This document shows, in pieces, positions 5,541-25,601 of a DNA stretch of 64,000 bases. The notes under the pieces are model-generated. The model saw only the letters and a program-made list of their open reading frames with translations. It was not told the DNA's origin and did not search any database. A program made the position numbers and the translations under genes. This DNA is from Paramoeba atlantica (lineage: Eukaryota > Protista > Discosea), in contig CDRNVI010000043.1 of assembly GCA_977017575.1 (NCBI GenBank), positions 124,001-188,000 of the forward strand. Direction: 5' to 3'. The stretch's first letter is position 1; the number at the start of each line of letters is the position of its first letter.

Positions 5541-6020
5541 TGTTTGTTCGCTCCCTATTTTTAGCTTTCCAGGGCTAGGGTCATAATTCGGAGAGACACG
5601 AGCTCGTTGAAGCCGAGGTTTAGCCCTTTGAAGCTGAGGAGCCAAGTCCGCTCAAAGGTATAACACCCTAGAAGACTTGGTCCGTTGAAGCTGAGGAGCC
5701 AAAAACCGTTGAAGCTCAGACTTGATACTCCCGAATATGGCACTAGTTTCTCCTTCGGGAGACGTGGGGCATTCGGAATGAATCAGGGCTAACACCCAGT
5801 TCGCCGAATAGCGAGGGCTTAGCTCTCCACGTGCCCGGGGAAGGAAGTCCTAGGACCTGCGGAGGCAGCAAATCGCTCACCGATTTGCATACCCTATTCG
5901 AAACTCGCAAGAGTTTCGATGATCCAGCGACCAGGCTCCCTCCCCCAAGTTCCCCTGCTTTCTCAGGGGAGGCGACATCCTTGTACTAGGGTAACCGCCT
6001 GTAATCACTATCACTATCAC
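2741..6020 (+). mobile_element. 5'-truncated APE-RT LINE (RTE/Ingi-like) with 15-bp TSD and (ATCACT)n tail
   Basis: TATTTCGGAGGAGGA at 2726-2740 and 6021-6035. The 3' end is about three ATCACT units, not poly(A). Confidence 0.9.
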
Positions 6021-6157
6021 TATTTCGGAGGAGGATCAACAGGTCAATATTCACAATCGTTTCGCCCCTCGTACGGAACTTATCGCGCGCAATGTTACAA
6101 TTGCAGATCACCAGACCATTTGATTAAAGATTGCCCATACAAACGCACATCACCGCC

Positions 6158-7960
6158 GGATTTTCGTCAGCGGACGGCTGGCAACGCCCCCCAGGGCGGA
6201 AAGTCGTTATGAAACGCCCGTCCATTAATCGCCAGTGTTCCTCGAGTCACATACACGCGTATAGATCCAGGAACGAACATCTCGCATATAATACCCGCCA
6301 AACGCGGCAGAAGCAAAGCAGTCAAATACAAGAGGATACATCCAGGGGATCAAAGGGAGAGTGTAGCGAAGAGAACGCGAGTGATACAAGGGGGTGTAAA
6401 AAATGTGAAAGACTCGAATGGAAGATCAATTGCTTGTGGAAATTTGTACCAGGGAACATTGAGCCTGGAATGCAGGAGTGTGGCTCGGAAAAATCTTTTG
6501 AGTCTGTTGATGGGGGTAAGCAGGATTACTCCCGAGGTACGCGTGGCATTGGACGCGATGTCCGGAATGTGGAGCTCGTCGACGTGGGAGACACGAGCAA
6601 GGTTGTGGGAAAGGTTCCTGGTATATTGCACCGGGAATCATATAAGACAGACACCCCTTCACGCAGTGACGTTCGTGCAACTTCTGCCAGTGTCAATACA
6701 AACCAAGGTGTCCTACGGAAGGGCGCTAATGACCTTATTCAACCTGATCGGATTAAATACTGTCCCAATAAAATTCTTTTGCAAAGCTCTTCAGGCACAA
6801 GGAGCAGAGGAGCCAGTACATCAGATGCAGCCGTTGACACCATTCCTACTGAACAAGATACGAAGAAGGTGCACCCAATCCGAAAGTCAAACATTGCTGA
6901 TGTGCTGGAAGGCAGCATCCCGTTGGTCCGAAACCGCCAATTTGACCAAGGACAAATTCGTGGAAATATCACCGCAAAAGGTTGTAATTGCTTGGGGAAG
7001 GGGGACAAAGGCTACAAGGTGCAACCCGTGGCGCGAATCGATGTACACAGTCATCCAGGGCCAGGGCACAATCGAATTGGCTCAATACGTACGTACGCTC
7101 AGGTCATGGGATCGAATGTGCCGGACAAATGTGAGAGAGATGGACAGGAATATAAAGAGGGTTCTGGGAGAGGGTTTCGGCACACATTCCGCCAAGAGAG
7201 GAGCGGTAACGCAATTATTCCAGGAAGTTGTCAAGGGGACAGTGGGAATCGAAGATGTGAAAAAATTAGCGAAGCACAAGCAGATCGAGCCCCTGTTGCG
7301 TTACAATTCAAACCCAGTTACCACCGCGCTAGCTCTAGGAACGGGGAAGGCGACAGCCAAACTGAGGACGCTTTAGCAATGAAGGAGTTATTTCGAGAAT
7401 ATTTGCGGGACATGCCGCAGGAAAAGCATCGATACACGATTGTACGTACCAGACGTACGACAAAATTGGCCACGGAGGAAGATTTAAAGCTACCACTGCA
7501 CGTAAAGAAAATTCCCAAAATGGATGTCAATGAAATTGAGAACATGATGAATGGAAGTACAAGAAACCGGTTTAGAGAAACGTTGAATACTTTGTTGGAT
7601 CGGAGGAAGAAACCCGATAGTGAGCCAAAGGTAAATCCACGATTGAACATGGAAGATATTAGTCATTTGCTAGACGCACGTATTGTTTCGCGTGTTTCCC
7701 CTGAGGAGGAGAACAAAAGACCATCCAATCAATGGGTGATACCGTTCACAGTAGTTGAGCCTGCGGACGATAAAGGGGAAACGGAGAGGCGGCGCTTCAT
7801 AGCCTGGACGAAGGAGAATAATGAGCGAATTAAGAACGAGTACATGCCGCACGTCCCGTTAAAACACGCGGCTTATTATCTCCATCGAGCGCAGGAAGCT
7901 TTTGGTGTGAAGCGTGACCTGACATGTGGATTTTATCAAGTACCGATTCCGGTAGCAAGT
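6158..7960 (+). CDS. RT frame of YR element 1 (-1 relative to gag, overprinting YR); RT proper from ATG 7379, truncated
   Basis: ORF track 6131-8236 is stop-free. RT-like PFTVVE...RRFIAW...KRDLTCGFYQVP matches the copy at 24282 onward. Confidence 0.75.
6213..7376 (+). CDS. Tyrosine recombinase of YR element 1 (gag frame, open from the gag TGA)
   Basis: R (AASRW), K (GTKAT), HxxR (THSAKR), H...Y (KHKQIEPLLRY). I read no stop from 6213 to 7373. Confidence 0.85.
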   Translation, partial: NARPLIASVPRVTYTRIDPGTNISHIIPAKRGRSKAVKYKRIHPGDQRESVAKRTRVIQGGVKNVKDSNGRSIACGNLYQGTLSLECRSVARKNLLSLLMGVSRITPEVRVALDAMSGMWSSSTWETRARLWERFLVYCTGNHIRQTPLHAVTFVQLLPVSIQTKVSYGRALMTLFNLIGLNTVPIKFFCKALQAQGAEEPVHQMQPLTPFLLNKIRRRCTQSESQTLLMCWKAASRWSETANLTKDKFVEISPQKVVIAWGRGTKATRCNPWRESMYTVIQGQGTIELAQYVRTLRSWDRMCRTNVREMDRNIKRVLGEGFGTHSAKRGAVTQLFQEVVKGTVGIEDVKKLAKHKQIEPLLRYNSNPVTTALALGTGKATAKLRTL

Positions 7961-8270
7961 AGAACAGGAGAAGCCACAGAACGAAAACATGGACATTATG
8001 TCGCAAGCGGACTAATTTCATCAGGAGCATTTCAGTGCCTACCAGTTTTATCCAGCGGAGGACTGAGCACAACAACAAGAAATCTCCTCTACGCTTTGGC
8101 CGACGCAACAGTTCAAAATAGAAAAACCGTAGAGGCCGACTTTAAACTTCTATTACAGGACCTCAACGGAGCTGCTGTATACTCGCAACTCCGCAAATAC
8201 TTAGCGTCGAATGGAACAGAAAATTATGGTTTTTGAGTCAAACAGATTAATACTTTAGTAAAATCATATT
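7961..8270 (+). mobile_element. 3' fragment of a CRE-like element
   Basis: RKHGHYVASG...CLPVLSSGG...QDLNG...ENYGF* matches the C-termini at 12814, 14023 and 27054. Confidence 0.8.
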
Positions 8271-8271
8271 C

Positions 8272-11200
8272 TTTTTTAGGCTCTTCGTTAAACGCGGTGG
8301 TTGTTTTCAACTTAGAAGTCACTCATGCTACGCTCTCCGAGTTGAAAACCACCACCGCGTTTAATGAAGAGCCTAAAAAAGAAAATTTAGCCTGGAAAAC
8401 GGAAAGATTACAACCAAAAATAGCCGAATTTCGGGTACAAATGGGGTCATTTTCGCATATTTTTGCTCTCAGAGCACTAAATCCGACATTTGCGCGTGGG
8501 AAATCACTCGCAGGCATGAATGAAAGCCTACCGAACGTATTGGGTAGAGAATGCGACTCCAACCATACCATTCTTTCGACACAAAAATGCCCCTTTAGGT
8601 CCGAAAAATACTTTTTCACCTTTTTTAGTCAAAAATGGGTCATTTTGAGGGGCGCACCACAGTTCGAAGAAGTGATACCTTGCGAAAACAACTGCGGAGA
8701 AAGGTAGTGTAGGTCCCAAACTATCAAAATACAATAGGGGAAACGATTTTGGAAAAATATTTTTTTTGTCATTTTTTTCGCCAAGTTGAAATTCTTTTCA
8801 AAAATTTTTTTCCGAAAAAATCCGAACTTGGCGGACCCGTCCTGCGGATACGCGGGGGGGTCACCCCCGGGTAGGGGGGTGGAAAATGCGCGCCAAGACC
8901 CCGGCTACCCTTTCTGCGGTTTTTTTTCGAAAACTAATTTTTTCGAAAAAATTTGATCGACCATGCCCCCCCCCCCCTGGACCCCCCCCCTGGACCCCCC
9001 CCCTGGACCCCCCCCCTGGACCCCCCCCCTGGACCCCCCCCCTGGACCCCCCCCATGGACCCCCCATTTTTTTCAAAAATTTTTTTCAGTTTTGGACCAC
9101 CGGAGCCCCCTTTTATATTTTTTTCTTCTATTATATTACTGTGTTCCTCTTTATATTTTCACTGTTTTTGTTCACTTTTTTTTCAATAATCGAGTGTAGA
9201 GCGGTAGTTTTACAACCACCGCAATAATCGAGTGTAGAGCGGTAGTTTTACAACCACCGCAATAATTTTCTTTTTTAGGCTCTTCGTTAAACGCGGTGGT
9301 TGCTTTCAACTTAGAAGTCACTCATGCTGCGCGCTTCGCGTTGAAAACTACCGCCGCGTTTAACGAAGAGCCTAAAAAAGAAAATTTAGCCTGGAAAACG
9401 GAAAGATTATAGCCAAAAATAGCCGAATTTCGGGTACAAATGGGGTCATTTTCGCATATTTTTGCTCTCAGAGCACTAAATCCGACATTTGCGCGTGGGA
9501 AATCACTCGCAGGCATGAATGAAAGCCTACCGAACGTATTGGGTAGAGAATACGACTCCAACCATACCATTCTTTCGACACAAAAATGCCCCTTTAGGTC
9601 CGAAAAATACTTTTTCACCTTTTTTAGTCAAAAGTGGGTCATTTTGAGGGGCGCACCACAGTTCGAAGAAGTGATACCTTGCGAAAACAACTGCGTAGAA
9701 AGCTAGTGTAGGTCCCAAACTATCAAAATACAATAGGGGAAACGATTTTGGAAAAATATTTTTTTTGTCATTTTTTTCGCCAAGTTGAAATTCTTTTCAA
9801 AAATTTTTTTCCGAAAAAATCCGAACTTGGCGGACCCGTCCTGCGGATACGCGGGGGGGTCACCCCCGGGTAGGGGGGTGGAAAATGCGCGCCAAGACCC
9901 CGGCTACCCTTTCTGCGGTTTTTTTTCGAAAACTAATTTTTTCGAAAAAATTTGATCGACCATGCCCCCCCCCCCTGGACCCCCCCCCTGGACCCCCCCC
10001 CTGGACCCCCCCCCTGGACCCCCCCCCTGGACCCCCCCCCTGGACCCCCCCCATGGACCCCCCATTTTTTTCAAAAATTTTTTTCAGTTTTGGACCACCG
10101 GAGCCCCCTTTTATATTTTTTTCTTCTATTATATTACTGTGTTCCTCTTTATATTTTCACTGTTTTTGTTCACTTTTTTTTCAATAATCGAGTGTAGAGC
10201 GGTAGTTTTACAACCACCGCAATAATTTTCTTTTTTAGGCTCTTCGTTAAACGCGGTGGTTGCTTTCAACTTAGAAGTCACTCATGCTGCGCACTTCGCG
10301 TTGAAAACTACCGCCGCGTTTAACGAAGAGCCTAAAAAAGAAAATTTAGCCTGGAAAACGGAAAGATTATAGCCAAAAATAGCCGAATTTCGGGTACAAA
10401 TGGGGTCATTTTCGCATATTTTTGCTCTCAGAGCACTAAATCCGACATTTGAGCGTGGGAAATCACTCGCAGGCATGAATGAAAGCCTACCGAACGTATT
10501 GGGTAGAGAATGCAACTCCAACCATACCATTCTTTCGACACAAAAATGCCCCTTTAGGTCCGAAAAATACTTTTTCACCTTTTTTAGTCAAAAGTGGGTC
10601 ATTTTGAGGGGCGCACCACAGTTCGAAGAAGTGATACCTTGCGAAAACAACTGCGTAGAAAGCTAGTGTAGGTCCCAAACTATCAAAATACAATAGGGGA
10701 AACGATTTTGGAAAAATATTTTTTTTGTCATTTTTTTCGCCAAGTTGAATTTTTTTTCGAAAAAATTTTTCCGAAAAAATCCGAACTTGGCGGACCCGTC
10801 CTGCGGATACGCGGGGGGGTCACCCCAGGGTAGGGGGGTGGAAAATGCGCGCCAAGACCCCGGCTACCCTTTCTGCGGTTTTTTTTCGAAAACTAATTTT
10901 TTCGAAAAAATTTGATCGACCATGCCCCCCCCCCTGGACCCCCCCCCTGGACCCCCCCCCTGGACCCCCCCCATGGACCCCCCCCATGGACCCCCCATTT
11001 TTTTCAAAAAAAATTTTCAGTTTTGGACCACCGGAGCCCCCTTTTATATTTTTTTCTTCTATTATATTACTGTGTTCCTCTTTATATTTTCACTGTTTTT
11101 GTTCACTTTTTTTTCAATAATCGAGTGTAGAGCGGTAGTTTTACAACCACCGCAATCGAGTGTAGAGCGGTAGTTTTACAACCACCGCAATAATTTTCTT

Positions 11201-12151
11201 TTTTAGGCTCTTCGTTAAACGCGGTGGTTGCTTTCAACTTAGAAGTCACTCATGCTGCGCGCTTCGCGTTGAAAACTACCGCCGCGTTTAACGAAGAGCC
11301 TAAAAAAGAAAATTTAGCCTGGAAAACGGAAAGATTATAGCCAAAAATAGCCGAATTTCGGGTACAAATGGGGTCATTTTCGCATATTTTTGCTCTCAGA
11401 GCACTAAATCCGACATTTGCTCGTGGGAAATCACTAGTAGGCATGAATGGAAGCCTACCGAACGTATTGGGTAGAGAATACGACTCCAACCATACCATTC
11501 TTTCGACACAAAAATGCCCCTTTAGGTCCGAAAAATACTTTTTCACCTTTTTTAGTCAAAAGTGGGTCATTTTGAGGGGCGCACCACAGTTCGAAGAAGT
11601 GATACCTTGCGAAAACAACTGCGTAGAAAGCTAGTGTAGGTCCCAAACTATCAAAATACAATAGGGGAAACGATTTTGGAAAAATATTTTTTTTGTCATT
11701 TTTTTCGCCAAGTTGAAATTTTTTTCAAAAAAAATTTTCCGAAAAAATCCGAACTTGGCGGACCCGTCCTGCGGATACGCGGGGGGGTCACCCCCGGGTA
11801 GGGGGGTGGAAAATGCGCGCTAAGACCCCGGCTACCCTTTCTGCGGTTTTTTTTCGAAAACTAATTTTTTCGAAAAAATTTGATCGACCATGCCCCCCCC
11901 CCCCTGGACCCCCCCCCTGGACCCCCCCCCTGGACCCCCCCCCTGGACCCCCCCCCTGGACCCCCCCCATGGACCCCCCCCATGGACCCCCCATTTTTTT
12001 CAAAAAATTTTTTCAGTTTTGGACCACCGGAGCCCCCTTTTATATTTTTTTCTTCTATTATATTACTGTGTTCCTCTTTATATTTTCACTGTTTTTGTTC
12101 ACTTTTTTTTCAATAATCGAGTGTAGAGCGGTAGTTTTACAACCACCGCAA
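8272..12151 (-). mobile_element. Tandem array of four ~0.95-kb non-autonomous Helitron2-like elements (starts ~8272, 9271, 10231, 11199)
   Basis: Near-identical units. Each has a ~40-bp-arm palindrome at one end and the hairpin GCGGTAGTTTTACAACCACCGC at the other. Related sequence flanks the RepHel gene at 28-40 kb. Strand is given relative to RepHel. Confidence 0.75.
8965..9066. repeat. (C7-8TGGA)n tract, G4-prone on the minus strand; present in each unit with variable copy number
   Basis: Also at ~9965-10065, 10925-10997, 11893-11993 and inverted at ~27273-27372. Confidence 0.9.
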
Positions 12152-12364
12152 TATATTTAATACATAAGCTTACAAAGACGCGTAAGCTTCAACAAAAAAA
12201 ATCAACAAACCAGAAAACTTAAATTATCTATTTATCTATTTATTTGTAAGTCCTGTTCTAGTTATTTTTGGAGGTAGTTTCTCTCACGAGAGAAGGGGGG
12301 AAGGTGATTTTTCGCCCGTGGCTTCCTGTCATAGGATTTCACAGGAGAAATGCCTCCAAGATAC

Positions 12365-12900
12365 GAAAGTTTTGCACCGCACCAAAAGCGCAATCATGAG
12401 CGAAAATGCGGAACAGGAAGGATACAACGCTCAGGACCCGACTTAGTAATATACTGGGCATCTGGCGAGAAATATTGCGATCTGACAATTGCTCATGAGT
12501 TAAGCCCCTCCAATCAAGGCAAGCGCGGCCATCGCTTGATGCAAGATGCGATCAAACGAAAGCAAGTAACGTACGTCAATTCGGTTTTAATACCGGGAAA
12601 CAAATTTGAATGCCTTCCCTTGCTTTCCGGTGGAGCGCTGCATCGCAATACAGAAAATCTTCTCAAGACGCTGGCGGATAGGGGCCAACTTCCGCGTATG
12701 TCCGTGATTTCAGAATTCAAATTGTATCTACAGGAGTTAAACGGGGCAGCTTCCCACTCGCAGCTTCGGCAATACCTTCCTCACAAGAACAGTGGGGAGG
12801 ACTACGGGTTTTAAAGGTTTTTCAAAAGTTCAAGGTCATAGTGGTTGGCAGATTTGGATGGAGAGGTAGTATTTAGAGTTAAACCCCCCCAAAAAAAAAA
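12365..12900 (+). mobile_element. 5'-truncated CRE-like copy with 3' UTR and A-tail
   Basis: Nearly identical to 21674-22020 and continues to EDYGF* at 12814. A-run at ~12891-12900. Confidence 0.85.
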
Positions 12901-12925
12901 CTTTTTCAATTTTTCGTATGTTATC

Positions 12926-13072
12926 AATTTCTCCGACCTGATGAGCAATTCTTCACAGTGTCTTTGCTCGTATGGGGTCCGATGAATCAAGCACGATTAG
13001 ATTCATACGGACGAATTCTTAGCTGGAGAGAATGGTGGAAAACTGTTCACTCGATCTTGATCAGTTCCTTGT
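12926..13072. ncRNA. Candidate structured small RNA upstream of tRNA-Ser (class unassigned)
   Basis: Stems GAGCAA/TTGCTC, GTCCGATGAATC/GATTCATACGGAC and GGAAAACTG/CAGTTCC, closing TCTCC/GGAGA; C-box-like TGATGA. Confidence 0.35.
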
Positions 13073-13088
13073 GGTAGAGACTCGGAAG

Positions 13089-13169
13089 GCGTCTATACCC
13101 AAGTGGTTAAGGGGCCTGGCTTGAAATCAGGTGTGTTCTCACGCGCAGGTTCAAACCCTGCTGGGCGCG
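13089..13169 (+). tRNA. tRNA-Ser(UGA)
   Basis: Acceptor GCGTCTA/TGGGCGC, anticodon loop CTTGAAA, long variable arm, GGTTCAAACC, followed by TTTT. Confidence 0.92.
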
Positions 13170-13292
13170 TTTTCCTTCCACAGGCGTTGTCAAATCATAT
13201 TCAGCGCGGGATACCAACTACGCCCGCACCGCTCTTCTTCTCTCTTCTTCTTCTTCTTCTATTCCGCGCAGAGTTTTTTTTGAAAAGGTGGG

Positions 13293-14023
13293 ATGCCCAG
13301 CGGTGCGGCACCCGTCGTGGGAACGCACGCTCCGCATAAAAGACGTTGTTCTGAATCTCGAGGAGGTTTTACCCACAGAAGCTGTGCCAAAGCGAAGGAC
13401 ACGCGTGCCAAAGCGAAGGACACGGGGGTAGCTCCCGTCGTCCAGTTGCTCCCCCCCACGCGTCGGAAGAAAGGCCGCCTCCTCCACAGTCGCCGCCGCC
13501 TCCACCACCACCTCAGTCACCCAGGTCACCACCACCACCGCCCCAGTCACCGCCAACGCTCCATGCGATGCCCTCATCTCCACCTCCTACGACGCGACTG
13601 GCTCCTCCCTCTGCGCCTCCCTCCCCACCGCGACTCAGCATGCACACACTGTCCCGAAGAGCGCGAATGAGGGCTCTGGAAATGCCTTCGGAGCGAACGG
13701 ATCCGCGAGAATTTTCAGCAGCTCACATAAACAAAACGCCTCAAAAAATGATGAACGAAGTCATCACGAAGAAACGCGACCGTTACGTAACTTCTGGGAT
13801 GATTGCGAATGATCGTTTCATGTGTATCCCTGTCCTTTCGGGTGGAGCGCTACATAAGCATACAAAACGTCTATTAACAGCTTTAGCAGATCGTTGCCTT
13901 ATTTCACGGCAACATATATTAGAAGACTTTGTCCTGTACCTCCAAGAACTGAACGGGAACATAGTTCTGTCGCAGATGCAAAAATATTTAACTCACGACA
14001 ACGAAGAACAATACACCATATAA
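13293..14023 (+). mobile_element. Internally deleted CRE-like remnant (low-complexity 5' part + REL C-terminus)
   Basis: KKRDRYVTSGMI...CIPVLSGGAL...QELNG...EEQYTI*. Confidence 0.65.
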
Positions 14024-14129
14024 GTTCAGACAGTGGACCAAAAGAGATGATCTCCCTCTCGTTTTTAATCAGACAGGAAAATGCATGTTTGTTCTGCTAT
14101 TAAAGCTAGTTTGTATGTATAGTTTTTTG

Positions 14130-15260
14130 ATGAGAAAGTTGAATACGTTTTGAGCACATGGCTTGGATCCCTAACGGCGAATCAGATCGAGATGGCTCGT
14201 GCGACGAAGGTAAAGTTTACGAAAAGTGAAGATTAACAAAAAAAAACCACGAAGGACCTTGGGGCGCGTGAAAAGCCGGACTAAAAAGCCGACAGCGGAT
14301 GAAATGCGAGAATCAACGTGCTCACCACCGCCACCTGTGACCCAGCAGACGGGGAAGTGGCGCATCTGCATCAAGAAATCGTTCGCTGTGGCAGCTGACG
14401 CCATCAAAACCGCTTCAAACGCAATGTCCGATACAGTTTTCAGCTCCGCAGATAACGTACAATCTGCAAATAACGTGCAACGCGGGGAACTCTACGACTC
14501 TCCTTCGGCGCAAAACGAAGACGTACATGCACAAATTTTGACAGAACAGAAGCGGCTTCCATCACCACAACCGGTTGACATGCAGCCAATGCCCCCGGCC
14601 ATGCAGGGCATCCTGCAAAGCTCTTCGTCGGACGTGATCCCCAACGTTGCTACAGGGGAAGCGATAGACGAAGGAACCACTTTACACGAATGCATGTCTC
14701 CTTCGATATGCGTAGAAAACTCTCGCACAGAAAACCCCCCCCGAAGAAGCAGAAGGAAAAAATAGAGATTCTGCATTAACCGTTCAGCTCGGAAAAGAGA
14801 TTGACCCCGAATCGCACTTCCCCATGGCGTTCGCGAGCATATGGAACACAGCCAAGCGGGCCAAAGTAGGAGATACGTGCACGGTTGCGTGGTGCTTTGA
14901 TTGTCAAACAGCCCTAAACATATCCACGGGAACAGTAAAAACGGTTAGAAGCAGGGGCGGATCAGGCAAAGTCACTCTCGATTACAAAGTCATCAAAGGG
15001 CACAATGTAGGAGCTTCATTCACGGGATTTCTTCCACCACAACCCAACGTTCGTGTATTTCTGGTACTTTGGGATAGAGATTTGAATGAAGATATCGGAA
15101 GAAACCACGAAGAAGACCACGCAGCTCCGGTACACGAACACACCGAAACAGATCTTGACCTCGACCCGATACCGACACAGAGGACAATAAGCCCTGAGTT
15201 CGTACCGTGCGTAGTCGCCATCTTCCGTGACATGATGCGTGACTACAAGGACATCAGCTA
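14130..15260 (+). mobile_element. CRE-like sequence: short post-RT fragment (~14130-14200), then the N-terminal part of the long copy
   Basis: VLSTWLGSLTANQI matches VLQSWFGKLSANQI. DPIPTQRTISPEFVPCV...RDYKDISY matches the copy at 14-940 and continues at 19547. Confidence 0.75.
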
Positions 15261-15534
15261 TGGTCCTAATATTATATATTCGAAAGGTAATATTGAAATT
15301 GTCCGGAAAATGGGTCTGTGCTGTTACAGAAATTTGAGATAAAACTACTGGGTAAGATTGAAGCTATGTATCAGAAGAAAATGAAAATATGTTTTCTTGT
15401 AGTATGAAATTCTAAGCCTAGGCAATGGCATTACGTATTAAAAATGTTACGTATGTGAAAGCATATTACAAACTCTATAATATAGTTTTCTTACCGTGTT
15501 TGTCAAATTTCTTGATTTTTTGTAACAAGCTCGA

Positions 15535-16655
15535 ATGGAGCAGTGCTCGAAAAAGTGCAAGGACTCTTCTACTGGAAGCGTAGAAGGGCCTATTCCCTTA
15601 TCAGAGCTGTGGTCTGTCGCTCATACGCTTAACAAAGGAGATATGGTACATTTCAAATGGCGATTAAAGTCATCAAATGGTGGGAAATCAGATCCTTGGC
15701 AAGAACAACAAGGTTACGTGAGATACGTAATTTTGGACGGGGGAGATGACCCGGCCGAGGGCAACTACTGCTGGTTGAAGTATCATCTTCCTGGAGAATA
15801 TGAGAAACGAACAGTTGCGTTCCCACAAGACGGGCTATATGACAACGATGAAGTCGAATATACATCACTCGTGGTCGTTCCGGCAAAGAAGTCTTCTCGT
15901 ATCTCAAAGAAGAATGAATCTGTTGAAGATTCGTCGCCTTGTTCGGAAGACATAGAAGACAGCGATTTGCTCCAAATTTCGGACTCGGAGAGCTCTGTGC
16001 CGTGCGGAAAGCCTAGTGAAACCATTGCCGACGACCCCCGAGTTGCTATGGATCCTGAAGTTTGGCCAAACGAAATATTCACTCCGATGCATTTCTTCAC
16101 GTTGCAGCAGTATTACCGTGACATTCTGGATGACTTTGGTTACAAGCACCCGAACCGCACAGTTTTGGAGATTCATGTACAGCGCATGCTCTACGAAATC
16201 GCAATGTTTCGCGGTCAACGAAGCCTCTCTTCTGATCCCAAATGGATTGCTAGCGTTCGTGACACGATAGGTTCCATTGATGTGATCCGGAAGGAAAAGC
16301 AAGGCTATACAAAAGCGGTAATTAGCGAGCTACAGCGATGCTACAAATCTAAAGCAGAACCAGCGTGGATGCGCGCCGTGCATCAGAGTGCTTTACAGAA
16401 CGTGAAGGCAACGACCCACAAGTGAACAATGACCCGCAAGTGACATATTACGCAAAGCGCCAAAACGCGGCCCCAAAACCGGGAGGCACAACAACCCAGT
16501 CCGGTTCATTCGAATCAAAAAGCGCAGCCAAACGCAAGAAGAAGAAGGAAGCACTTTCTAGCAGAGTAGACAGTGTCATCTCTAAGTTGGGACCTGCATT
16601 TGACAAGTTATCGGTTGAAGAAAAGTCGGTGTTCCGTCGTGGGGGTTTTCAGTAG
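15535..16655 (+). CDS. Gag-like region of YR element 2 (two ORFs, 15535-16425 and 16365-16655, offset by a frameshift)
   Basis: Position before YR and N-terminal similarity to the other Gags. No CCHC knuckle. The frameshift near 16400 is probably a lesion. Confidence 0.6.
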
Positions 16656-19264
16656 GGCGTGGGGGCCCAGAAAAACCCCTAAAGCAACACCGTTACAGAC
16701 AAGGCCTTGTCTCTTCGGGCCCAGAGACAAGGCTCTTCGGCACGGGTCCAGTCGAAGGCTCAAAAGACGGAGGCAGTGAGGTCGGCTTTGTCCAACCCCG
16801 AAAGTGTGCTTTCGCTCGAAAAGGAGGCTTTTCACGTTCGAGATGTTTCGGAAAATCATCAACGAACGCGTCAGAGAGTGGAAGAAATGTATCATCTGTC
16901 TGGGGAAAACAGCCTAGCCTGCCTGGAGAGATGGCGCCAGATTTATGCTCCAACAACTGCACTCCTGTATGGGAAAGTACTCAATGCCTTGTATCCTCAA
17001 AAATGCCCGAAACAGTTTCGCGTACTTTTAAGCCATATCCGCCAGCAGAGCGGGGTTTTGAAGGTTCACCTCGCAACCGCTGTTACCCCGATTCAGATAG
17101 CTCAGATCCTAAGACGCGAAGATCAAGAGACGGCAGCAACGGTGTTGCTCATGTTTATCAGCGAGTCTCGTCACATGGACCTCATGCGAATTTGGAAATA
17201 CGAGTGGAACCCTCCGAACCTTTCCATGCAATGGAACACATGGAAATGCGACAGGTTCGGACAACGAGCTTTCACAGAGTTCCTCAAGATTCCCAAAAAA
17301 CTATGGGACTTCATACCCCCTACAAGCACGTTCGTGACGTATCAAAAGGCTCTAAAAGCTATGAAGCGGGAGGACGTGGCTCTGAGTGTTCACTCTTGCC
17401 GTCGGGGGGCAGCGACGACCTTGGCTGCGCACGGGTATTCGATGAAAGAAATCGAGAGTGCAACGGGGCATACCCCTCACGGGGGATCAGATGCCCGCGG
17501 AGCGCGAAGATACGTCGATCAAACCCGTCATCAGCCGGAAGGGAAACTACAGATTCAAATGGCGAGTGTGCTATGCTTGGAAGTAGAGAAAAACATGCAC
17601 TAAGTTGTATAACTGAAGAATCCACTATATCTATGGCTCGACTATGGGAACTTCGGTGGTGGGTGTGTCCTCGCGACATTTTGCTGAATTTACTAAAAGA
17701 AGAACAATTCTTCAATGTCACAGTAGGAATGTTTTCCTCCGGATCGCTTTTAAGCATCAAAATAAATCAAGGAGAGTCCAGAAACGGAATGCCACGTCGC
17801 CAGACAAAGTGTGAATTGCCTCTTGCACCGATCACGAAGTCGAGGATGTGTTTGCGAACGATCCTGGATATGGAACCCTCGAACGTTCAACTACGTGATT
17901 TATTGGCTTGGATCACGACAGACCGAATAGCTGGTACTGTGGAAAGGGTAGAAAAACGTGCATGGAACGAGCTTCGTTTCCGAAATCATGTGTCACGTCA
18001 CCTGCTCCGTGATTTACCTCTCTTGATAGAAACAGGGGTGTTCAAACCCGCAGGGCTGTCGCATAGGATCGTGAACATTCCTCTTTTCAAGGTTCCTAAA
18101 GCCCATAAGATAGGATCCAGACTCATTGGAGACTGCAGAGCATTGAACGATCTGTTGCCGAAACCGGGTGAAATGAATTTACCCCGAATAGATTACGTTT
18201 TGCGGGCGTTGCTCCCAAAGCGCTGGTTATATCAGAGGGATGGAAAATCGTACTTTTACCAATTCCCAATTCATGAAAGTCTGCAGAAAATTCTGGTTTC
18301 GAAAGTGGGAAATGAACGAGGCGATTTTTTATGTGTAAACTGGACAGTTTTGCCAATGGGATTCTCGTTTGCGCCTGCCATCGCACAACAGTGTTCATGG
18401 GTACTTGCGCGTGGAGGGAAATCGCGCCAAAAAGAAAGTGTACTCATTCCTTGGATCGACAATTTCCTTATGGGAGCGGACTCTGAAATCGAGATTCAAA
18501 ACCTGAAATTTGACTTTGAAAAAGTCTGTGAAAACGTTGGTTTGCAACTAAAAGAGCAGGATTTTGCACATGCACGGTCAATGAATTTCCTCGGGCTCTA
18601 CATGAATGTGGATACCGAAAACAGCGATTTTCATTTTGTGGAGCTAGACAGACATTTTTGCAAGAAGCTCATGGTGCTTCGCGATGCAGTATCTACTCCG
18701 CGGTCGTTCTACGAACTTTTTAGCGCACTCATATGGGCAAATTACTCAATTATGCGACAGCCATTGGCACGATGGATCCATGCGTTGGAGTACACCCGAT
18801 TTTTAGGTGTACAAATCGCGGGCAATCAAATTAAATGGGACGACCCTATTATACCTGTGTTAGGAGTGTTGGAGGACCTGAAGGACATGGTCGGTGCAAG
18901 TGTTAATGCAAAGCTTTTGTTCCGAGATTTCTACAAGTCTGGAGCATTCCCTCTTTGGACAGATGCAGTTCCCACATGCATAGCAGGAGTCAGCGATGAA
19001 GCAGGGGATCTTCGCGCCTTCTCGAGCACCATTCCGGAAATGAATATTTTCAATGCGGAGCTTTTGGCTGCAGTAACAGGCATTCTGAATGTGGATCGGC
19101 CGGTTAGTTTAATTGGAGATAACAAGGCCGTGGTCCGGGCACTGGAAAAGGGACACTGTGGTATAAGAGCTGGAAATAGACTGCTTCACCAGCTATGGAA
19201 GTGCTTACAGCATGACTTCGTATCAGTGAAATGGGTTCCTTCTTGTTGTAATCCGGTGTTGTAA
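16643..19264 (+). CDS. RT/RNase H frame of YR element 2 (open from the slippery site at 16643)
   Basis: LFKVPK...RLIGDCRALN, DGKSYFYQF, LPMGFSFAP, WIDN, FLG. RNase H WTDA, NAELLA, GDNKAV, WVPS. I read 16643-16931 as stop-free and in frame with the ORF-track ATG. Confidence 0.85.
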   Translation, partial: GFSVGRGGPEKPLKQHRYRQGLVSSGPETRLFGTGPVEGSKDGGSEVGFVQPRKCAFARKGGFSRSRCFGKSSTNASESGRNVSSVWGKQPSLPGEMAPDLCSNNCTPVWESTQCLVSSKMPETVSRTFKPYPPAERGFEGSPRNRCYPDSDSSDPKTRRSRDGSNGVAHVYQRVSSHGPHANLEIRVEPSEPFHAMEHMEMRQVRTTSFHRVPQDSQKTMGLHTPYKHVRDVSKGSKSYEAGGRGSECSLLPSGGSDDLGCARVFDERNRECNGAYPSRGIRCPRSAKIRRSNPSSAGRETTDSNGECAMLGSREKHALSCITEESTISMARLWELRWWVCPRDILLNLLKEEQFFNVTVGMFSSGSLLSIKINQGESRNGMPRRQTKCELPLAPITKSRMCLRTILDMEPSNVQLRDLLAWITTDRIAGTVERVEKRAWNELRFRNHVSRHLLRDLPLLIETGVFKPAGLSHRIVNIPLFKVPKAHKIGSRLIGDCRALNDLLPKPGEMNLPRIDYVLRALLPKRWLYQRDGKSYFYQFPIHESLQKILVSKVGNERGDFLCVNWTVLPMGFSFAPAIAQQCSWVLARGGKSRQKESVLIPWIDNFLMGADSEIEIQNLKFDFEKVCENVGLQLKEQDFAHARSMNFLGLYMNVDTENSDFHFVELDRHFCKKLMVLRDAVSTPRSFYELFSALIWANYSIMRQPLARWIHALEYTRFLGVQIAGNQIKWDDPIIPVLGVLEDLKDMVGASVNAKLLFRDFYKSGAFPLWTDAVPTCIAGVSDEAGDLRAFSSTIPEMNIFNAELLAAVTGILNVDRPVSLIGDNKAVVRALEKGHCGIRAGNRLLHQLWKCLQHDFVSVKWVPSCCNPVL
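16683..17603 (+). CDS. Tyrosine recombinase of YR element 2
   Basis: SESRH (R), TWKCD (K), VHSCRRG (HxxR), TGH...ARRY (H,Y). Frame open from 16683. Confidence 0.85.
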   Translation, partial: SNTVTDKALSLRAQRQGSSARVQSKAQKTEAVRSALSNPESVLSLEKEAFHVRDVSENHQRTRQRVEEMYHLSGENSLACLERWRQIYAPTTALLYGKVLNALYPQKCPKQFRVLLSHIRQQSGVLKVHLATAVTPIQIAQILRREDQETAATVLLMFISESRHMDLMRIWKYEWNPPNLSMQWNTWKCDRFGQRAFTEFLKIPKKLWDFIPPTSTFVTYQKALKAMKREDVALSVHSCRRGAATTLAAHGYSMKEIESATGHTPHGGSDARGARRYVDQTRHQPEGKLQIQMASVLCLEVEKNMH

Positions 19265-19546
19265 TCTCGAGGTTCGTTTGGAATCCCAATGGTTCTTGGA
19301 TCCTGCCCGCATGGGGGTTCAGAGGATCCGATACGGTGGGAAGGGGGGAGGCACGGGGGGCGGCATGGGGGGAGTTTATAAGGACAAGCTCGCAGCGTTA
19401 AATCAAGATATTAAGCATTATTTTGTTTTCACCATCAAATCCGTGAGATATACTTTAGATATTTAATGGCCCATGCTACGTTACATATTATATTCACTCA
19501 AAATAATAGTTTCACGTGTTTTCCGTTCCTTTATTTATTCACATGT

Positions 19547-22020
19547 TACGAAGAAAGAAACAAAGTGTGGAACCGAGTCCTATCTGCAACAAAGTATTCC
19601 CTCGCGGCCGTTCAAGCAGCTGCAGCCAAACGCAGGAGTCGCCACCCCCCACGCGCACCCTCAAGTCACCCGTCAAGCGCAGGTCAATCCAAGACAGAAG
19701 CGAGGGACACAAGAGCTATTAAACGAGCTACAAGGCTAGTTCTGGAAGGCGCAGTATCCAAGGCCACTAAAGTTCTAGACAAAGAAATAAAAGAGAAAAC
19801 ACTCACTGATGATGTAATCTTCGAAAAGTTGAAGCAGTTGCACCCCCAAAAACCCATAACCTTTAATCTTCCGTCGGATGCACCACAAATAGCTTGTATT
19901 ACTCCGACCGAACTACGTAGTGCAGGACGACATCTCGCGAAAGGCGCATCCCCAGGGCCGACGGGCATAACAGATGTAATCATCAGGATACTGCTTGACG
20001 ACGAAATATGCTGTGTAAGCTTCTGCCATATGCTTATGGATTTAATCAATGGTGAATTATCCAAACAAGTCATGGCTAGGCTTCGTCGCGCCAGACTCGT
20101 AGCGATACCAAAATCGGATGAACATGTCCGACCGATTGCAGTAGGAGAGCTAATCTTAAAGCTTGCTGGGTTAATCTTACTACAACGACACGAAGGGAGC
20201 TTGGAGAAACTCTTTACGCCCATACAGCATGGGGTAATGCTGAAAGGTGGTTGCGAGCAAGTCGTCCACAAACTGCACGCACTTTACAAGGAAGAGTACG
20301 CTATTCTATCAATCGACCTAAAAAACGCGTTCAACTCGCCTTCTCGTGACGACATTGCAAGATCCGTGTTTGCATTTCATACGCTAAAGCCTTTTCACAA
20401 GTTCTTCCACGCTGAATACGCAGAGCCCTCAGAAATGCTGTTCTATGGTTCTGATGGACAGCTTTTTGGGACCGTAAGCAGTACAGCTGGGGTACGACAG
20501 GGATCTTCTCTTTCAACGCTATACTTCTGTTCTTTTCTCCAACCACTGCTAGAAACTCTGGCGCAAGAGTTCCCTGAGCTACGCATTTACGCCTACATAG
20601 ATGACGTCAATTTCGCATCGAAAGACGCTCAGCTCCTTTCGGATGCGTACCTTCGTCTTAATCAGCTTGTGTCCGAGAAGCATCTACAAATGGCGTACAA
20701 CAAGTGTGTGTGGTTCACAGGCACAGCAAATATTGCTCTTCCGGAACAGCTTGCATTGGATGGTGTCCAATCTGAAACCGAAGCGTGTAAGGTCCTGGGT
20801 GCGTATATAGGGCGGGAAGAACGAGTCAGTGAACGTCTTCTTCATAAATTGGAAAAACATGGCACAATATTTCGACGACTAAAAAACATGGGTGCAAACA
20901 ACATTTCGCTCCACTTGTTATCTAGATGCGTTAATGTACGACACGGCTATCACACTCGAGTGCACGGACCTGATGCGACTGAACAACTTACCGAGAAATT
21001 TGATGAAGCAGTCAATGATGTCCTGCAGTCATGGTTCGGGAAATTGTCAGCTAATCAGATTGCATGGGTTTGTCTTCCTGTCAAGTTGGGGGGGCTAGGG
21101 CTAACTTTTTTTTTTTTTTTTTTTTAGGGCTAACTCCAACCGTGCCAATCCTCGAGGCGGCGTATCGGAACTCCAAACGCTCTTGAGCGTTTTAACTTTG
21201 TTTCAGCTCGGGCAACCGTTGTGGTGTCACCTGCGCCTCTTGGGGAGGAGCACACTCCAGATGACGAAAGCACAACTGCAGCTATTCACCACAACCAAGT
21301 AAGAGAACGAATTCTACAAGATCCTGCACAAGCCAGGATAGTATCTGCCACTTGTGAAAAAGGAAACTACGACTGGCTCGCCTCCTCGTCTCGTCTGGTC
21401 CCATCTCATTTATTCACCCTTTCTGTTCTTCCCCGACTTGGTCTCCCACACCCCGACATACCGTGCAATCTCCAGTGCCCTGGCTGCAACATTCTCCTTG
21501 ACTCTTCTTCAGCTCTGCGACACATCCCCGCGTGCACTAAATGTCCAGGAAACAATGCAACCACGAAACATAATGCCCTGGTTCGTCACGTACACGAGCT
21601 CGCGTTGAAGGCCGGCTTGCCATGTGAAAGAGAACCCCGCCAATTCACCTCATATCGATGTACGGCGTGCTCTGAAAGTTTTGCACCGCACCAAAAGCGC
21701 AATCATGAGCGAAAATGCGGAACAGGAAGGATACAACGCTCAGGACCCGACTTAGTAATATACTGGGCATCTGGTGAGAAATATTACGATCTGACAATTG
21801 CTCATGAGTTAAGCCCCTCCAATCAAGGCAAGCGCGGCCATCGCTTGATGCAAGATGCGATCAAACGAAAGCAAGTAACGTACGTCAATTCGGGTTTAAT
21901 ACCGGGAAACGAATTTGAATGCCTTCCCTTGCTTTCCGGTGGAGCGCTGCATCGCAATACAGAAAATCTTCTCAAGACGCTGGCGGATAGGGGCCAACTT
22001 CCGCGTATGTCCGTGATTTC
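19547..22020 (+). mobile_element. CRE-like element, RT + Zn knuckle + REL endonuclease (continuation of 14200-15260), frameshifted
   Basis: SPGPTG, IDLKNAFNS, GVRQGS, YIDD; CPGC...HIPAC, KHN, REP, PDLVI...YDLTI...KRK. Confidence 0.9.
21097..21135 (-). mobile_element. Poly(A)-only retro-insertion (T-run on +) with 9-10-bp TSD
   Basis: AGGGCTAAC(T), T-run 21106-21125, AGGGCTAACT. Removal restores GGLGLTPT as in the copy at ~26040. Confidence 0.8.
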
Positions 22021-22209
22021 TATAAGTTTACGATTTGAAATTCAGGAGGGCAAACATTATGCTCCATACTGTTGTAGTTTTGGGCTTAGGAATATTATTC
22101 GAATTATATCACCGTTTTTTCTAATCATGAACAATTTGACATATACACAATTATTTGACTATTTTAGAGACTATTTTCATCCGAACGTTACCACTAGTTT
22201 TTGTTTTTC

Positions 22210-23193
22210 ATGTCGCACCAGTTGTTTGGCACTCCTGGTGCCCCTGAAGGGATTGAGTCACGTATCGAACAAGTTCTAAGTACGGACCAAGTTGCGAATT
22301 TGTTGCGAGACGGAAATGGAGTTGATCCCATGACTGAGAATGAAAAACAACAGTTCTCCAAGAAAGTTATGACTTTGCTGGAGAAGGGGTTTAAGGTGCA
22401 AATACAGGCAACATGGGCCGAGCGCGGTGAAGATGTGAATCAAACTGTTGTGGGTAAAGTATACCGTAAGAAGGCGAAAAACAGTGATGAGTTTGATATT
22501 TGGGCCCTGTGGGAGGATGATCCTGACAATGAGTATGAGTTCCCCCATCCGCTGATTGACTATTTCGCACTTTCTATCGTTAAAGTTTACAAGGCGATGC
22601 CAGGTGGACAGCCGCGTGATGAGCAGCTAGCTGCGCTGGAAGGAATGCAAGTTCGTGACCCATCTAAGTTTTCTTCATTTGTTCCTTTGACGTGGGCGGC
22701 TTGGATCGACTCTCTGGATGAATTTAAGCCGCGAGAGCTTGTTCGTGAGCTGCGTGAAACTCCGGAGCTGGGAGTTCGCTTCAATCCTCCGGCACATCGT
22801 GAGCGCTTGTTTGCCATATTGGTAAAGTGGATTTATACAGCTAGAGTGATGGAAGGATGGAAAGATGAGCAATTCATTTGTATCGCGGAAATGCTCATCG
22901 AAGAGCTTCGAAATCATTATTGGGCAGCAGCGGGAGCTCCTGTAGAACGTGTTCAGCAGCGCCTTCACAAGGATGATGATCCTCAGGATCGTTACGGACA
23001 AATCATGACAGAGGAACAGCTGCGTGTGAATCTCCTACCACGGGTTGTGAAAGGAGCGCATGTATGCTACAATTGTCGCCAAACTGGTCACGTTCGCGCT
23101 CAATGTCCTCGTTTGCAAAGCGGGGCACCACAACCGGTTTTTCGTGGGGGGGTGGCGAGCGGCGCCCAGACGGGCGTAAGACGCACACAATAG
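22210..23193 (+). CDS. Gag-like protein with CCHC zinc knuckle
   Basis: ATG 22210; CYNCRQTGHVRAQCP; TAG 23191-23193. Confidence 0.8.
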   Translation: MSHQLFGTPGAPEGIESRIEQVLSTDQVANLLRDGNGVDPMTENEKQQFSKKVMTLLEKGFKVQIQATWAERGEDVNQTVVGKVYRKKAKNSDEFDIWALWEDDPDNEYEFPHPLIDYFALSIVKVYKAMPGGQPRDEQLAALEGMQVRDPSKFSSFVPLTWAAWIDSLDEFKPRELVRELRETPELGVRFNPPAHRERLFAILVKWIYTARVMEGWKDEQFICIAEMLIEELRNHYWAAAGAPVERVQQRLHKDDDPQDRYGQIMTEEQLRVNLLPRVVKGAHVCYNCRQTGHVRAQCPRLQSGAPQPVFRGGVASGAQTGVRRTQ

Positions 23194-24285
23194 GATTTGT
23201 GCCCCACCCCGACAAATGCTCGTGCCCGACCGTTGAGGATACGGCGGGTGAACTTACCAGGCTCTTCTCCGAATTCATCTTTATTCTTGCGAATGGAAAG
23301 TGCAAGTGCAGTGGAAAGAACGGATTTACCGAGACTTCAAATTCGGAGGGGAAAACACGTGTTCGGAACGGCAGCGCCTTTGGCAAGGGAACAAACGAGA
23401 TCAAACCTTTTATGCGATATACTCGGACTCAACCCAAAGGATCCGCACGGTCAGATCGTTCGGAAAGCAATCGAGCCCATGTGGGCAACAAGTACGTGGG
23501 GAACGAGGGAGAGGCTGTGGCTCCGGATGCAAGACTTTTGTGCACAACGTCACCTATCTCAAAACGCGCTCAGTGCGGTCAGGTTCGTAGACTCATTGAA
23601 ACTAGCGACGTCGACACGACTGGCCTACGCAAGGAATCTGCAGACTCTTATTACGCTCATGGGGGCCGAAGCAACCACATTGAATATGTACGGAAAGGCG
23701 TTGCAAGCGCAAGGCGGACTAAAACCACAGAGACAAATGCTTGCAATTACTCCCGTCCTTCTAAGACGGTTGAGAAGAAGTCTAACAACATCCGAGAGCA
23801 TGACGGCTCTTTTGTGCTGGAAAACGGCAGCTCGTTGGACGGAAACGGCGGAACTCTCGACAGAACAGATATTAAAGGTTACTCCCGAAGAGGTGGTGAT
23901 TTACTGGGGAAGAGCAACGAAGTCAACGAGAATGAACCCCTTTCGACCGTATATGTACGCGATTGTGACGGGCCCCGGAACTGCCGAGTTAGCGGACTAC
24001 ATGAGACGAATACCCCAAGGGTGCAGAATGTGCTACACGGAGGTATCTCGAATGGACAGCAAAATACGCGAAATCATGGGAAATGGCTATGGGACGCATT
24101 CAATAAAAAGGGGTGCAATCACGTGGCTGTTCCAGGAAGTGGCTCAAGGGAATCTAACGATATCAGAAGTTCAGAACATGACCAAGCATTTAAATGTCGA
24201 AAGTCTGTTAAGATACAATGCAAACCAAGTAACGACGGCCAGAGCGCTCGGAACGCAACGTGTATCGGCGAGACTCCCGGCATGA
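23194..24285 (+). CDS. Tyrosine recombinase of YR element 3, in the gag frame directly after TAG
   Basis: TAARW, ATKST, THSIKR, TKH...LLRY. Confidence 0.88.
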   Translation, partial: DLCPTPTNARARPLRIRRVNLPGSSPNSSLFLRMESASAVERTDLPRLQIRRGKHVFGTAAPLAREQTRSNLLCDILGLNPKDPHGQIVRKAIEPMWATSTWGTRERLWLRMQDFCAQRHLSQNALSAVRFVDSLKLATSTRLAYARNLQTLITLMGAEATTLNMYGKALQAQGGLKPQRQMLAITPVLLRRLRRSLTTSESMTALLCWKTAARWTETAELSTEQILKVTPEEVVIYWGRATKSTRMNPFRPYMYAIVTGPGTAELADYMRRIPQGCRMCYTEVSRMDSKIREIMGNGYGTHSIKRGAITWLFQEVAQGNLTISEVQNMTKHLNVESLLRYNANQVTTARALGTQRVSARLPA

Positions 24286-25601
24286 CAGCTGAACTGTTGG
24301 AGCAAGTTTACTCTGAGGTACCGTACTTGAAACGGCACTCGATTACTTGCGCGCGGCGCTCGTCTAAGCTGGCCACGGCAAAAGATTTTGAGATACCATT
24401 ACACGTGAAAATGAATACACCTCTAATGGATCTAAAGGTAGTGAAAGGATGGATGGACTTGCCAACCAAGATGCGCTTTCAAAATGTCATTGACGAACTT
24501 CTACACGTTCCTGAAATAGCTGAAAAAGAGCCGAAAGGACTCAATTCTCTACCTGTGTCCGATATTGCGCTTCTTTTGAAGGCCGGTATCATTTCTCAAG
24601 TTTCTTCTGAATGAATTAGAGCGTCGTCCTACAGCTCAATTTATCATCCCGTTTACTGTAGTGGAACAAGACGAATTTGGTCACGATCGGAGGAGATTTA
24701 TATCTTGGTCGCGCGGGGATAATGACCGGTTGAAAGATTATGTCCCTGATGTTCCCCTGCTTCATCCTAGTAAATATTTGCATCGAGTTGACGACGCTAT
24801 AGGAGTGAAAAGAGATTTAAGCTGTGGATTCTATCAAGTACCACTTCCTCTAGCTGCGCGTTGTAAATTTCGCTTTTCATCAAAAGGCCGTACTTATGAA
24901 ATGAACGTTCTTCCGATGGGGCATAGGTGTGCCCCAGAAATCATGCATACGATAACTTCCGCCCTTGGGGGACTTGTCACAGTGTGTAGCGCTAAATCTG
25001 CTTTTATACGAGGAGCTATGGATGTGTACGTTGATGGAGTTCGGTTTTCGGGAACTGTGGAACAAGCGCAGGAGTACGCACGCTTTGTGGATAAACGGTG
25101 CGATGAGATGGGAGGAAAATTCAAGGAGAAAGGTCATGAGCCGACACAGCACTATGTATTTAATGGAGTTCATTACGATCACGTCAATCACAAGGTCAGC
25201 CTGGGACCACGTGTGGTGCGTAAGTTGCAGAATGACCGATTTTACTCGTTAAGCTTCAAAGATCTGGAGGTGGCGGTGGGGCGCCTTCTGTACGCATCTG
25301 CTGTGCTTGGTATAGTCATTCCGCGATTTCATTTCGCTGTCAAGATTGTTCAGCGACGAATTAATTTGTTGAATCGATGTCCGTGGATAGGTAATAAGTC
25401 TGTTGACCTTCCACGAAAAACACGTATTATTTTGGCACAATGGAGGGATGAGGTAGTATTAAATACTCCGATTAAAGCTCCACTTCATCCAGATTTCGTT
25501 CCTCACAAACATCGTCTTTACACAGATGCTTCTCGCAAAGGGTGGGGAGGGATTCTGTATCTGGATACAGGAGAGGTTTTGATAACAGGCAAGCCATGGG
25601 A

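Follow-up and report, generated by a model that had tools for sequence, protein, structure and literature searches.

Three tyrosine-recombinase (YR) retrotransposon copies lie on the forward strand of the analysed window, a 64,000-nucleotide stretch of contig CDRNVI010000043.1 (assembly GCA_977017575.1, listed under Paramoeba atlantica). They are VIPER-like elements of this kinetoplastid genome with the order gag, YR, reverse transcriptase (RT) and RNase H (RH). Each carries a heptamer near the end of gag, in the phase of the open frame that ends at the next stop. The features of the three elements are as follows.

1672-2740 (+), element 1, 5' part: terminal repeat and most of gag (ATG at 1850; ORF 1850-2779), 99.1% identical to positions 1085-2155 of L047, an intact copy
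2741-6020 (+), LINE-like insert that splits gag of element 1 and is not part of the YR element
6021-6212 (+), element 1, gag 3' end with the CCHC knuckle; stop TGA at 6210-6212
6158-6164 (+), element 1, slippery heptamer G_GAT_TTT
6171-6235 (+), element 1, predicted pseudoknot: stem A, 6171-6177 with 6218-6224; stem B, 6178-6182 with 6231-6235; hairpin C, 6185-6198; hairpin D, 6205-6216, with the gag stop in its loop
6213-7376 (+), element 1, YR frame, open from the codon after the gag stop and in the same frame as gag
6128-8236 (+), element 1, -1 frame, 702 codons; similarity to intact copies ends at 7966
16643-16649 (+), element 2, slippery heptamer G_GGT_TTT, 3 nt before TAG 16653-16655
16683-17603 (+), element 2, YR frame, in the gag-end frame and preceded by a second stop at 16680-16682
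16619-19264 (+), element 2, -1 ORF, 881 codons, with the RT domain at about 18095-18598
22198-23193 (+), element 3, gag with a CCHC knuckle (zf-CCHC, E 2.4e-5); stop TAG at 23191-23193; the 5' repeat of the element starts near 22015
23136-23142 (+), element 3, slippery heptamer G_GTT_TTT
23149-23222 (+), element 3, predicted pseudoknot: stem A, 23149-23155 with 23204-23210; stem B, 23156-23160 with 23218-23222; two hairpins lie between, and the gag stop lies inside
23194-24285 (+), element 3, YR frame, in the same frame as gag and directly behind its stop
22980-24614 (+), element 3, -1 frame, 544 codons, broken by a frame change near 24600
24580-25773 (+), element 3, RT continuation, now in another frame

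From heptamer to YR stop, the -1 frame is open for 406, 320 and 383 codons in elements 1, 2 and 3, respectively, in agreement with the approximately 407, 320 and 382 codons given in the earlier note, which first recorded the heptamers and their phase. However, the statement in that note that this frame is continuous with RT/RNase H holds only for element 2 and for intact relatives. All three window copies are damaged elsewhere. In element 1, gag is split by the 3.28-kb insert, which interrupts the match to L047 (the flanks overlap by 15 nt of L047) and carries a 958-aa ORF at 2664-5540 with an RVT_1 domain (E 2e-32); most of RT is missing. Element 2 has a frame break in gag near 16353-16425 in addition to its second frame-0 stop, and belongs to a rare, decayed family with 9 fragments in the genome, a single lineage that adds little to the argument. 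Element 3 changes frame near 24600, whereas L042, a 98% identical copy, stays open for 874 codons.

Because of this damage, 12 intact families from the same genome (YR identity 99% down to 43%) and 8 contigs from other public samples were examined. In these sequences, gag ends in one stop, YR follows in the same frame, and the -1 frame stays open for 925-1,311 codons into RT/RNase H. Profile searches support the assignment of the region after YR, with an RVT_1 match above the cut-off in element 2 (E 1.3e-8, 35.3 bits), a weak RVT_1 match in element 3, whose RT continuation is 56% identical to the element 1 -1 frame, and hits of the family profile to caulimovirus, HIV-1 and Ty3 RT chains (E 5e-5 to 4e-3). 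Additionally, RNase H-like TDAS..GWG and DN motifs are invariant. In contrast, profile matches for the recombinase are only weak, and its identity remains a prediction. The element 2 frame matches Phage_integrase at E 2.8e-4, below the Pfam cut-off, and the family profile matches a PDB integrase at E 0.0033. Conserved R, K, H, R, H and Y columns are present, the YRs of elements 1 and 3 are 46% identical, and one relative is named "integrase" by its source.

The open -1 frame over YR is very unlikely to be a by-product of YR codon usage. In the 12 intact family representatives, it has 0 stops over YR, whereas synonymous-codon shuffles of the same YR sequences give 10-13 stops, and 0 of 20,000 shuffles per family were stop-free. 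The +1 frame has 17-34 stops, as expected. Notably, this stretch, described in the earlier note as a dual-coding segment, is not dual-constrained. Codon-position divergence shows amino-acid constraint in the YR frame only: YR-frame position 3 diverges 0.5-0.67 throughout, and the -1-frame peptides are 18-40% identical where YR is 43-73% identical. The spacer, which is rich in serine, glycine and arginine, gave no hit in a profile search of the PDB. The -1 frame over YR is therefore kept free of stops but is otherwise unconstrained, and its translation is inferred from stop avoidance alone.

The -1 frame opens 3-198 nt before the heptamer, never after it, and in some families (L031, L048 and L036) only 3-12 nt before it. 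It has no conserved ATG, the first one lying anywhere from -72 to +798 nt. An AUGA stop/start overlap, in which a -1-frame ATG overlaps the gag TGA, exists in elements like element 1 but is absent in families with TAG stops or with TTC TGA, and so is not the general route. These observations argue against the possibility that RT/RH is translated on its own, from a trans-spliced subgenomic mRNA or by internal or non-AUG initiation inside or behind YR, with the heptamer and pseudoknot serving something else. In its favour, kinetoplastids make mRNAs by trans-splicing, and a spliced-leader-like segment lies in genomic DNA next to these elements. As no RNA run covers the element (matching runs are contigs of unknown kind, showing only that its DNA or RNA is present in four runs of one study), this alternative is not excluded directly. 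However, it is unlikely, since an RT with its own start would not need the 380-410 stop-free codons upstream that all 12 families and 8 outside contigs keep.

The heptamer was found in 43 of 53 copies examined, and the 10 copies without one are truncated or frame-broken. It is always in gag phase and varies among GGAUUUU, GGGUUUU, GGUUUUU and GGAUUUC and, in distant contigs, GGGAAAC, GGGAAAU and AAAAAAC, all of which are slippery forms. One distant contig (L057) has only A_ACA_AAC at the expected place. The element 1 form is identical and in phase in families down to 55% YR identity and in contigs from other samples. Strictly canonical X_XXY_YYZ sites are GGGUUUU, GGGAAAC, GGGAAAU and AAAAAAC, whereas two of the three window heptamers, GGAUUUU and GGUUUUU, do not have this form. 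G_GAU_UUU, G_GGU_UUU, G_GUU_UUU and G_GGA_AAC appear to serve as -1 frameshift sites in unrelated plant and animal RNA viruses (dianthovirus, luteovirus, cardiovirus and polerovirus), although shifting in cardioviruses probably needs a viral protein, which has no counterpart here. The conserved P-D-F-R peptide of many families could instead suggest that the Asp-Phe codons are kept for Gag itself. This explanation is contradicted by the data and is very improbable, as the encoded amino acids change (D/G/V-F, G-N, K-N) while slipperiness stays, and the wobble G before the heptamer is kept across six different codons (CCG, CAG, GAG, CGG, AAG and GGG). The cassette pattern occurs 186 times in the genome and 0 times for the reversed control.

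After a spacer of 6 nt in all families comes stem A, followed by stem B, which crosses it (H-type), and two inner hairpins. Compensated changes occur at A4, A5, A7, B2, B3 and B5, and stem B of element 3 differs from that of element 1 by two compensated pairs. In pair tables, stem B is paired in 80/80 cells against 12-35/80 when slid, and stem A in 100/112 against 49-67. The covariance model did not reach the element 3 clade and did not fix a 2-column register shift of stem A; therefore, pairs were counted in both registers and with a separate anchoring. On the model-fitted alignment, 86-92% of cells are paired against 33-58% when slid, and the covariation score is 0.20 against 0.11-0.13 in shuffles, reached by 0 of 500. 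RNAalifold recovers stems B and C. However, single-sequence folding is not better than shuffles (z of -1.2 to -1.3 for the window copies), and a pseudoknot of this size arises in 1-18% of shuffled downstream sequences per family, and in more than 50% for the G+C-rich families. The structure therefore rests on covariation and conservation.

Taken together, these features are best explained by programmed -1 ribosomal frameshifting, with a probability of about 0.8 in the absence of experimental, RNA or peptide evidence. In this model, most ribosomes on the full-length mRNA translate gag and stop, whereas a fraction slip back one base on the heptamer, held up by the pseudoknot that encloses the gag stop. 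The shifted ribosomes then read about 380-410 codons in the -1 frame of the YR gene and continue into RT/RNase H, producing a Gag-spacer-RT/RH fusion. That ribosomes actually shift there, and at what rate, is inferred. The RT ORFs of such elements should be annotated as joined to gag at the heptamer rather than started at the first ATG.

The structure around the gag stop could alternatively act on the stop itself, promoting readthrough or reinitiation to make YR, with the -1 frame entered in some other way. YR is open in the gag frame from the codon after the stop in 12 of 12 families and 8 of 8 contigs, for which the chance is 1-6% per family and about 30% in two G+C-rich ones. Moreover, the stop sits in the loop of hairpin D, and some lineages have AUG 0-2 codons after the stop. 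As a replacement for frameshifting, this reading is improbable, because it does not explain the phased heptamer, its switching among slippery forms, the fixed 6-nt spacer or the open -1 frame, and a ribosome that reaches the stop must already have opened the 5' strands of stems A and B. However, it can be true in addition to frameshifting. A tentative extension is that one RNA cassette sets a three-way split of ribosomes on a single trans-spliced mRNA, with termination giving Gag, a -1 shift giving Gag-spacer-RT/RH, and readthrough or reinitiation at the gag stop giving YR. Such a split would make the nested YR/RT arrangement a solution for expressing three proteins without splicing or internal promoters, and the same logic would explain the long-noted YR/pol overlaps in VIPER, TATE and DIRS1.

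The overlap of YR and RT is itself already known. In VIPER and TATE of trypanosomatids and Bodo saltans (DIRS order), a Gag-like ORF with a CCHC box is followed by YR and RT/RH, the latter two described as overlapped (PMC6681497, PMC12278014). Those papers give no mechanism for the overlap and do not mention a slip site, readthrough or RNA structure; no paper describing frameshifting was found, nor any paper for two NCBI assemblies that carry distant relatives. Extensive overlap between the pol and YR frames is likewise recorded in half of 28 annotated DIRS1-like elements (PMC3266345), which have inverted terminal repeats, a methyltransferase domain and a different gene order. Frameshifting at the heptamer would offer a testable mechanism for these overlaps and add tyrosine-recombinase retrotransposons to the users of gag-pol frameshifting, as well as being a case of -1 frameshifting on a nuclear-encoded kinetoplastid mRNA. 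As in gag-pol frameshifting of retroviruses and LTR retrotransposons (for example, HIV-1, RSV and MMTV), a slippery heptamer in gag phase near the gag stop is followed by a 5-8-nt spacer and a downstream stem or pseudoknot, and the pol frame has no initiator. In contrast to those systems, the shifted ribosome would first cross about 400 codons laid over another complete gene, kept open purely as a passage, before reaching RT. The elements described here also have no protease and no integrase, their pseudoknot encloses the gag stop and two inner hairpins, and the host is a kinetoplastid. A 180-190-bp repeat is present near both ends of two families.

The host of this DNA is a kinetoplastid. A neighboring gene carries the kinetoplastid PH-like domain, and the genome holds a spliced-leader-like segment at very high read depth. 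The first 27 kb of the window (positions 1-27000) is a nest of retroelements, three of which are gag-YR-RT elements (YR being a probable tyrosine recombinase), and all three are damaged. The principal features are as follows.

1671-1848 and 22015-22204: a 180-190-bp segment at the 5' end of the elements
1672-2740: 5' part of element 1
2741-6020: 3.28-kb LINE-like insert, with a 958-aa ORF carrying RVT_1, that splits gag of element 1
6021-7966: element 1 resumed, up to the point where its similarity to an intact copy ends
6128-8236: open -1 frame of element 1
16619-19264: open -1 frame of element 2
22980-24614: open -1 frame of element 3
28912-37809: uninterrupted 2,965-aa ORF with Helitron_like_N and PIF1 helicase domains

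Because the similarity of element 1 to the intact copy ends at 7966, most of its RT is missing. The flanks of the LINE-like insert overlap by 15 nt of the intact copy, a possible target duplication. Element 2 belongs to a rare, decayed family represented by 9 fragments in the genome, and it has a frame break in gag and two stops between the gag-end frame and YR. Element 3 is 98% identical to another copy over 3.5 kb but changes frame near 24600. The 180-190-bp segment at the 5' end of the elements recurs in related copies downstream of the end of the RT frame, at a distance of about 280 nt in L047, an intact copy related to element 1, and of 1.8 kb in L042, a copy related to element 3, which is consistent with split direct repeats.

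The earlier note had placed a slippery heptamer at the end of gag in each of the three elements, followed by a stop-free -1 frame across YR, and this observation is confirmed. Each heptamer is in the phase of the frame that ends at the next stop, and the -1 frame extends from heptamer to YR stop for 406, 320 and 383 codons in elements 1, 2 and 3, respectively. In all three elements, YR lies in the same frame as the gag end.

To determine whether this anatomy holds in intact copies, the host genome was searched in six frames with the element 1 YR. At least 121 copies were found, falling in tiers of 99, 74, 70, 60, 57-53 and 48-47% identity, and 50 of them were read. Every intact representative of 12 families has the same organization: a gag ORF of 355-466 codons from its first ATG, ending in a single stop; a YR frame open from the very next codon, in the same frame; a -1 frame that opens 3-198 nt before the heptamer and runs 925-1,040 codons through YR into RT/RNase H; and a +1 frame full of stops. 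Copies that break this pattern are individual damaged members of families whose other copies are intact. At G000:C18:36332-44701, five copies of the frameshift cassette lie exactly 2,087 nt apart (with one gap of 2,084), which suggests a tandem array of a short derivative of the element.

Stop avoidance was assessed by shuffling synonymous codons within each YR, a procedure that keeps both the protein and the codon usage. The shuffles give 10-13 stops in the -1 frame, and none of 20,000 shuffles per family was stop-free, whereas the observed count is 0 in all 12 families. In contrast, the +1 frame carries 17-34 stops, as the shuffles predict. YR-frame third positions differ at 50-67% of sites between families, and the families are therefore close to independent trials of this avoidance.

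Although the -1 frame is kept open over YR, it does not show the conservation of a protein. Codon-position divergence across the overlap is about 0.6 at position 3, about 0.35 at position 1 and about 0.2 at position 2 of the YR frame, the signature of a single constrained frame. The -1-frame peptides over YR are 18-40% identical between families, while the YR proteins from the same DNA are 43-73% identical. These peptides are rich in Ser, Gly and Arg and poor in Leu, and their profile hits no solved structure. Conservation in the -1 frame begins at the YR stop. The 540 residues after it have 63% mean column identity, with RNase H-like TDAS..GWG and DN motifs, and their profile hits caulimovirus, HIV-1 and Ty3 RT chains; element 2 passes the Pfam cut-off for RVT_1. 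In an alignment of the RT part of 11 families, the motif at the usual YxDD place reads Y-V-D-G in all 11, with an invariant D two residues before the Y. The overlap is thus real, but it is a passage and not a second protein, whereas the earlier note had called it a dual-coding segment. Beyond the RT ORF, a conserved G+C-rich inverted repeat (GGGTGGTCCCCGCG...ACCC) follows in several families, just after the RT stop in loci L047, L048 and L049 and about 190 nt after it in L031 and L035, and may be a cis element for replication or recombination.

The -1 frame has no conserved ATG, as its first ATG lies anywhere from 72 nt before to 798 nt after the heptamer. In three families, the -1 frame opens only 3, 9 or 12 nt before the heptamer, and entry must therefore happen in the roughly 50 nt between that point and the gag stop. 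An AUGA overlap of a -1-frame start with the gag stop exists in the relatives of element 1; however, it is absent where the stop is TAG or is preceded by TTC.

The heptamer is always in gag phase. Within this genome, it reads GGAUUUU in most families, GGGUUUU in several, GGUUUUU in the element 3 family and GGAUUUC in one copy. Contexts that are otherwise identical differ only by A or G at the third base. The codon before the heptamer is CCG, CAG, GAG, CGG, AAG or GGG, and it always ends in G. A profile of the YR proteins finds 1,292 relatives in public data, from which eight contigs of other samples, with YR identity of 36-42% or lower, were examined. All show gag, one stop, YR in frame and a -1 ORF of 595-1,311 codons, some of which run off the contig end. 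Their phased heptamers lie 25-70 nt before the stop and read GGAUUUU (two contigs), GGGUUUU, GGGAAAC (two contigs, one from an NCBI assembly), GGGAAAU and AAAAAAC, whereas one contig has only A_ACA_AAC there. The amino acids encoded therefore change, while slipperiness is what is kept.

Downstream of the heptamer, a 6-nt spacer is followed by a G-rich strand, stem A, which pairs with a C-rich strand just 3' of the gag stop. The next five bases, stem B, pair 4-10 nt further downstream, such that the two helices cross as in an H-type pseudoknot. The long loop between them holds two hairpins with almost fully replaced sequences between families. The second of these, at 6205-6216 in element 1 and at equivalent places in all families, always carries the gag stop in or beside its loop. 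Compensated changes in the two stems include the following.

Paired forms seen in stems A and B
Stem A: GGACGG/CCGUCC, GGGCGG/CCGCCC, GGGUGG/CCACCC
Stem B: CUGGC/GCCAG, CGAGC/GCUCG, CGAGU/ACUCG

In an anchored table, stem B is paired in 80 of 80 cells against 12-35 when slid, and stem A in 100 of 112 against 49-67. RNAalifold on ten families recovers stem B and one of the inner hairpins (stem C), with three pairs changed on both sides. On a model-fitted alignment of 21 distinct sequences, 86-92% of cells pair, against 33-58% when slid, and the covariation score is 0.20, against 0.11-0.13 in shuffles, a value that none of 500 shuffles reaches. However, folding energies of single sequences are not better than shuffles, with z near -1.2, a pseudoknot of this size turns up in 1-18% of shuffled downstream sequences and more often in G+C-rich families, and relatedness inflates shuffle tests. 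The case for the structure therefore rests on the compensated changes. The distant contigs fold into the same plan, with a closing stem 4-6 nt after the heptamer that encloses the stop.

Taken as a whole, the interpretation of the earlier note that RT is reached by frameshifting is supported, and the best reading is classical gag-pol -1 frameshifting, to which we assign a probability of about 0.8, the shift itself being inferred. The unusual feature is that the pol frame first crosses the whole YR gene. The main alternative, a separate RT mRNA or an internal start, does not explain why 400 upstream codons are kept open in every lineage and appears unlikely, although, as no RNA run covers the element, it is not excluded directly. 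Overlap of the YR and RT/RH ORFs is already stated for YR elements in general and for VIPER and TATE (PMC6681497, PMC12278014), as well as for DIRS1-like elements (PMC3266345). None of these papers, nor a T. cruzi retrotransposon review (PMC5814959), mentions a slip site, frameshifting as a mechanism or readthrough, and a full-text search for ribosomal frameshifting together with tyrosine recombinase retrotransposons found nothing relevant, within a literature that excluded most subscription papers and the original VIPER description.

A second recoding event may sit at the same place. The YR frame is open from the codon right after the gag stop in all 12 families and all 8 outside contigs (window positions 6210-6380 and 23191-23340; L031, L033, L041 and other loci). 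The chance of that is 1-6% per family for 60 codons, and about 30% in two G+C-rich families. This frame has no conserved ATG, but some lineages have AUG 0-2 codons after the stop (UGA AUG in L057, a distant contig, and in L059; UAG GAA AUG in the L040 group). Readthrough or termination-reinitiation for YR is therefore plausible.

The spliced-leader-like segment, of 35-44 nt and ending ...CAGTTTCTGTACCTTGTTG, lies in genomic DNA directly after poly(A) tracts, 50-130 nt behind the RT stop of several YR elements, and once inside an RT (loci L002:3290-3333, L033:5215-5250 and L041:5138-5172). Read depth there is 40-90 times that of the flanks, and in the one run guessed to be RNA it sits near contig ends. 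The segment may mark retroposed trans-spliced RNAs or a neighboring element family that begins with the leader. Finally, the 2,965-aa ORF at 28912-37809 is a Helitron-type transposase next to the retroelement nest.
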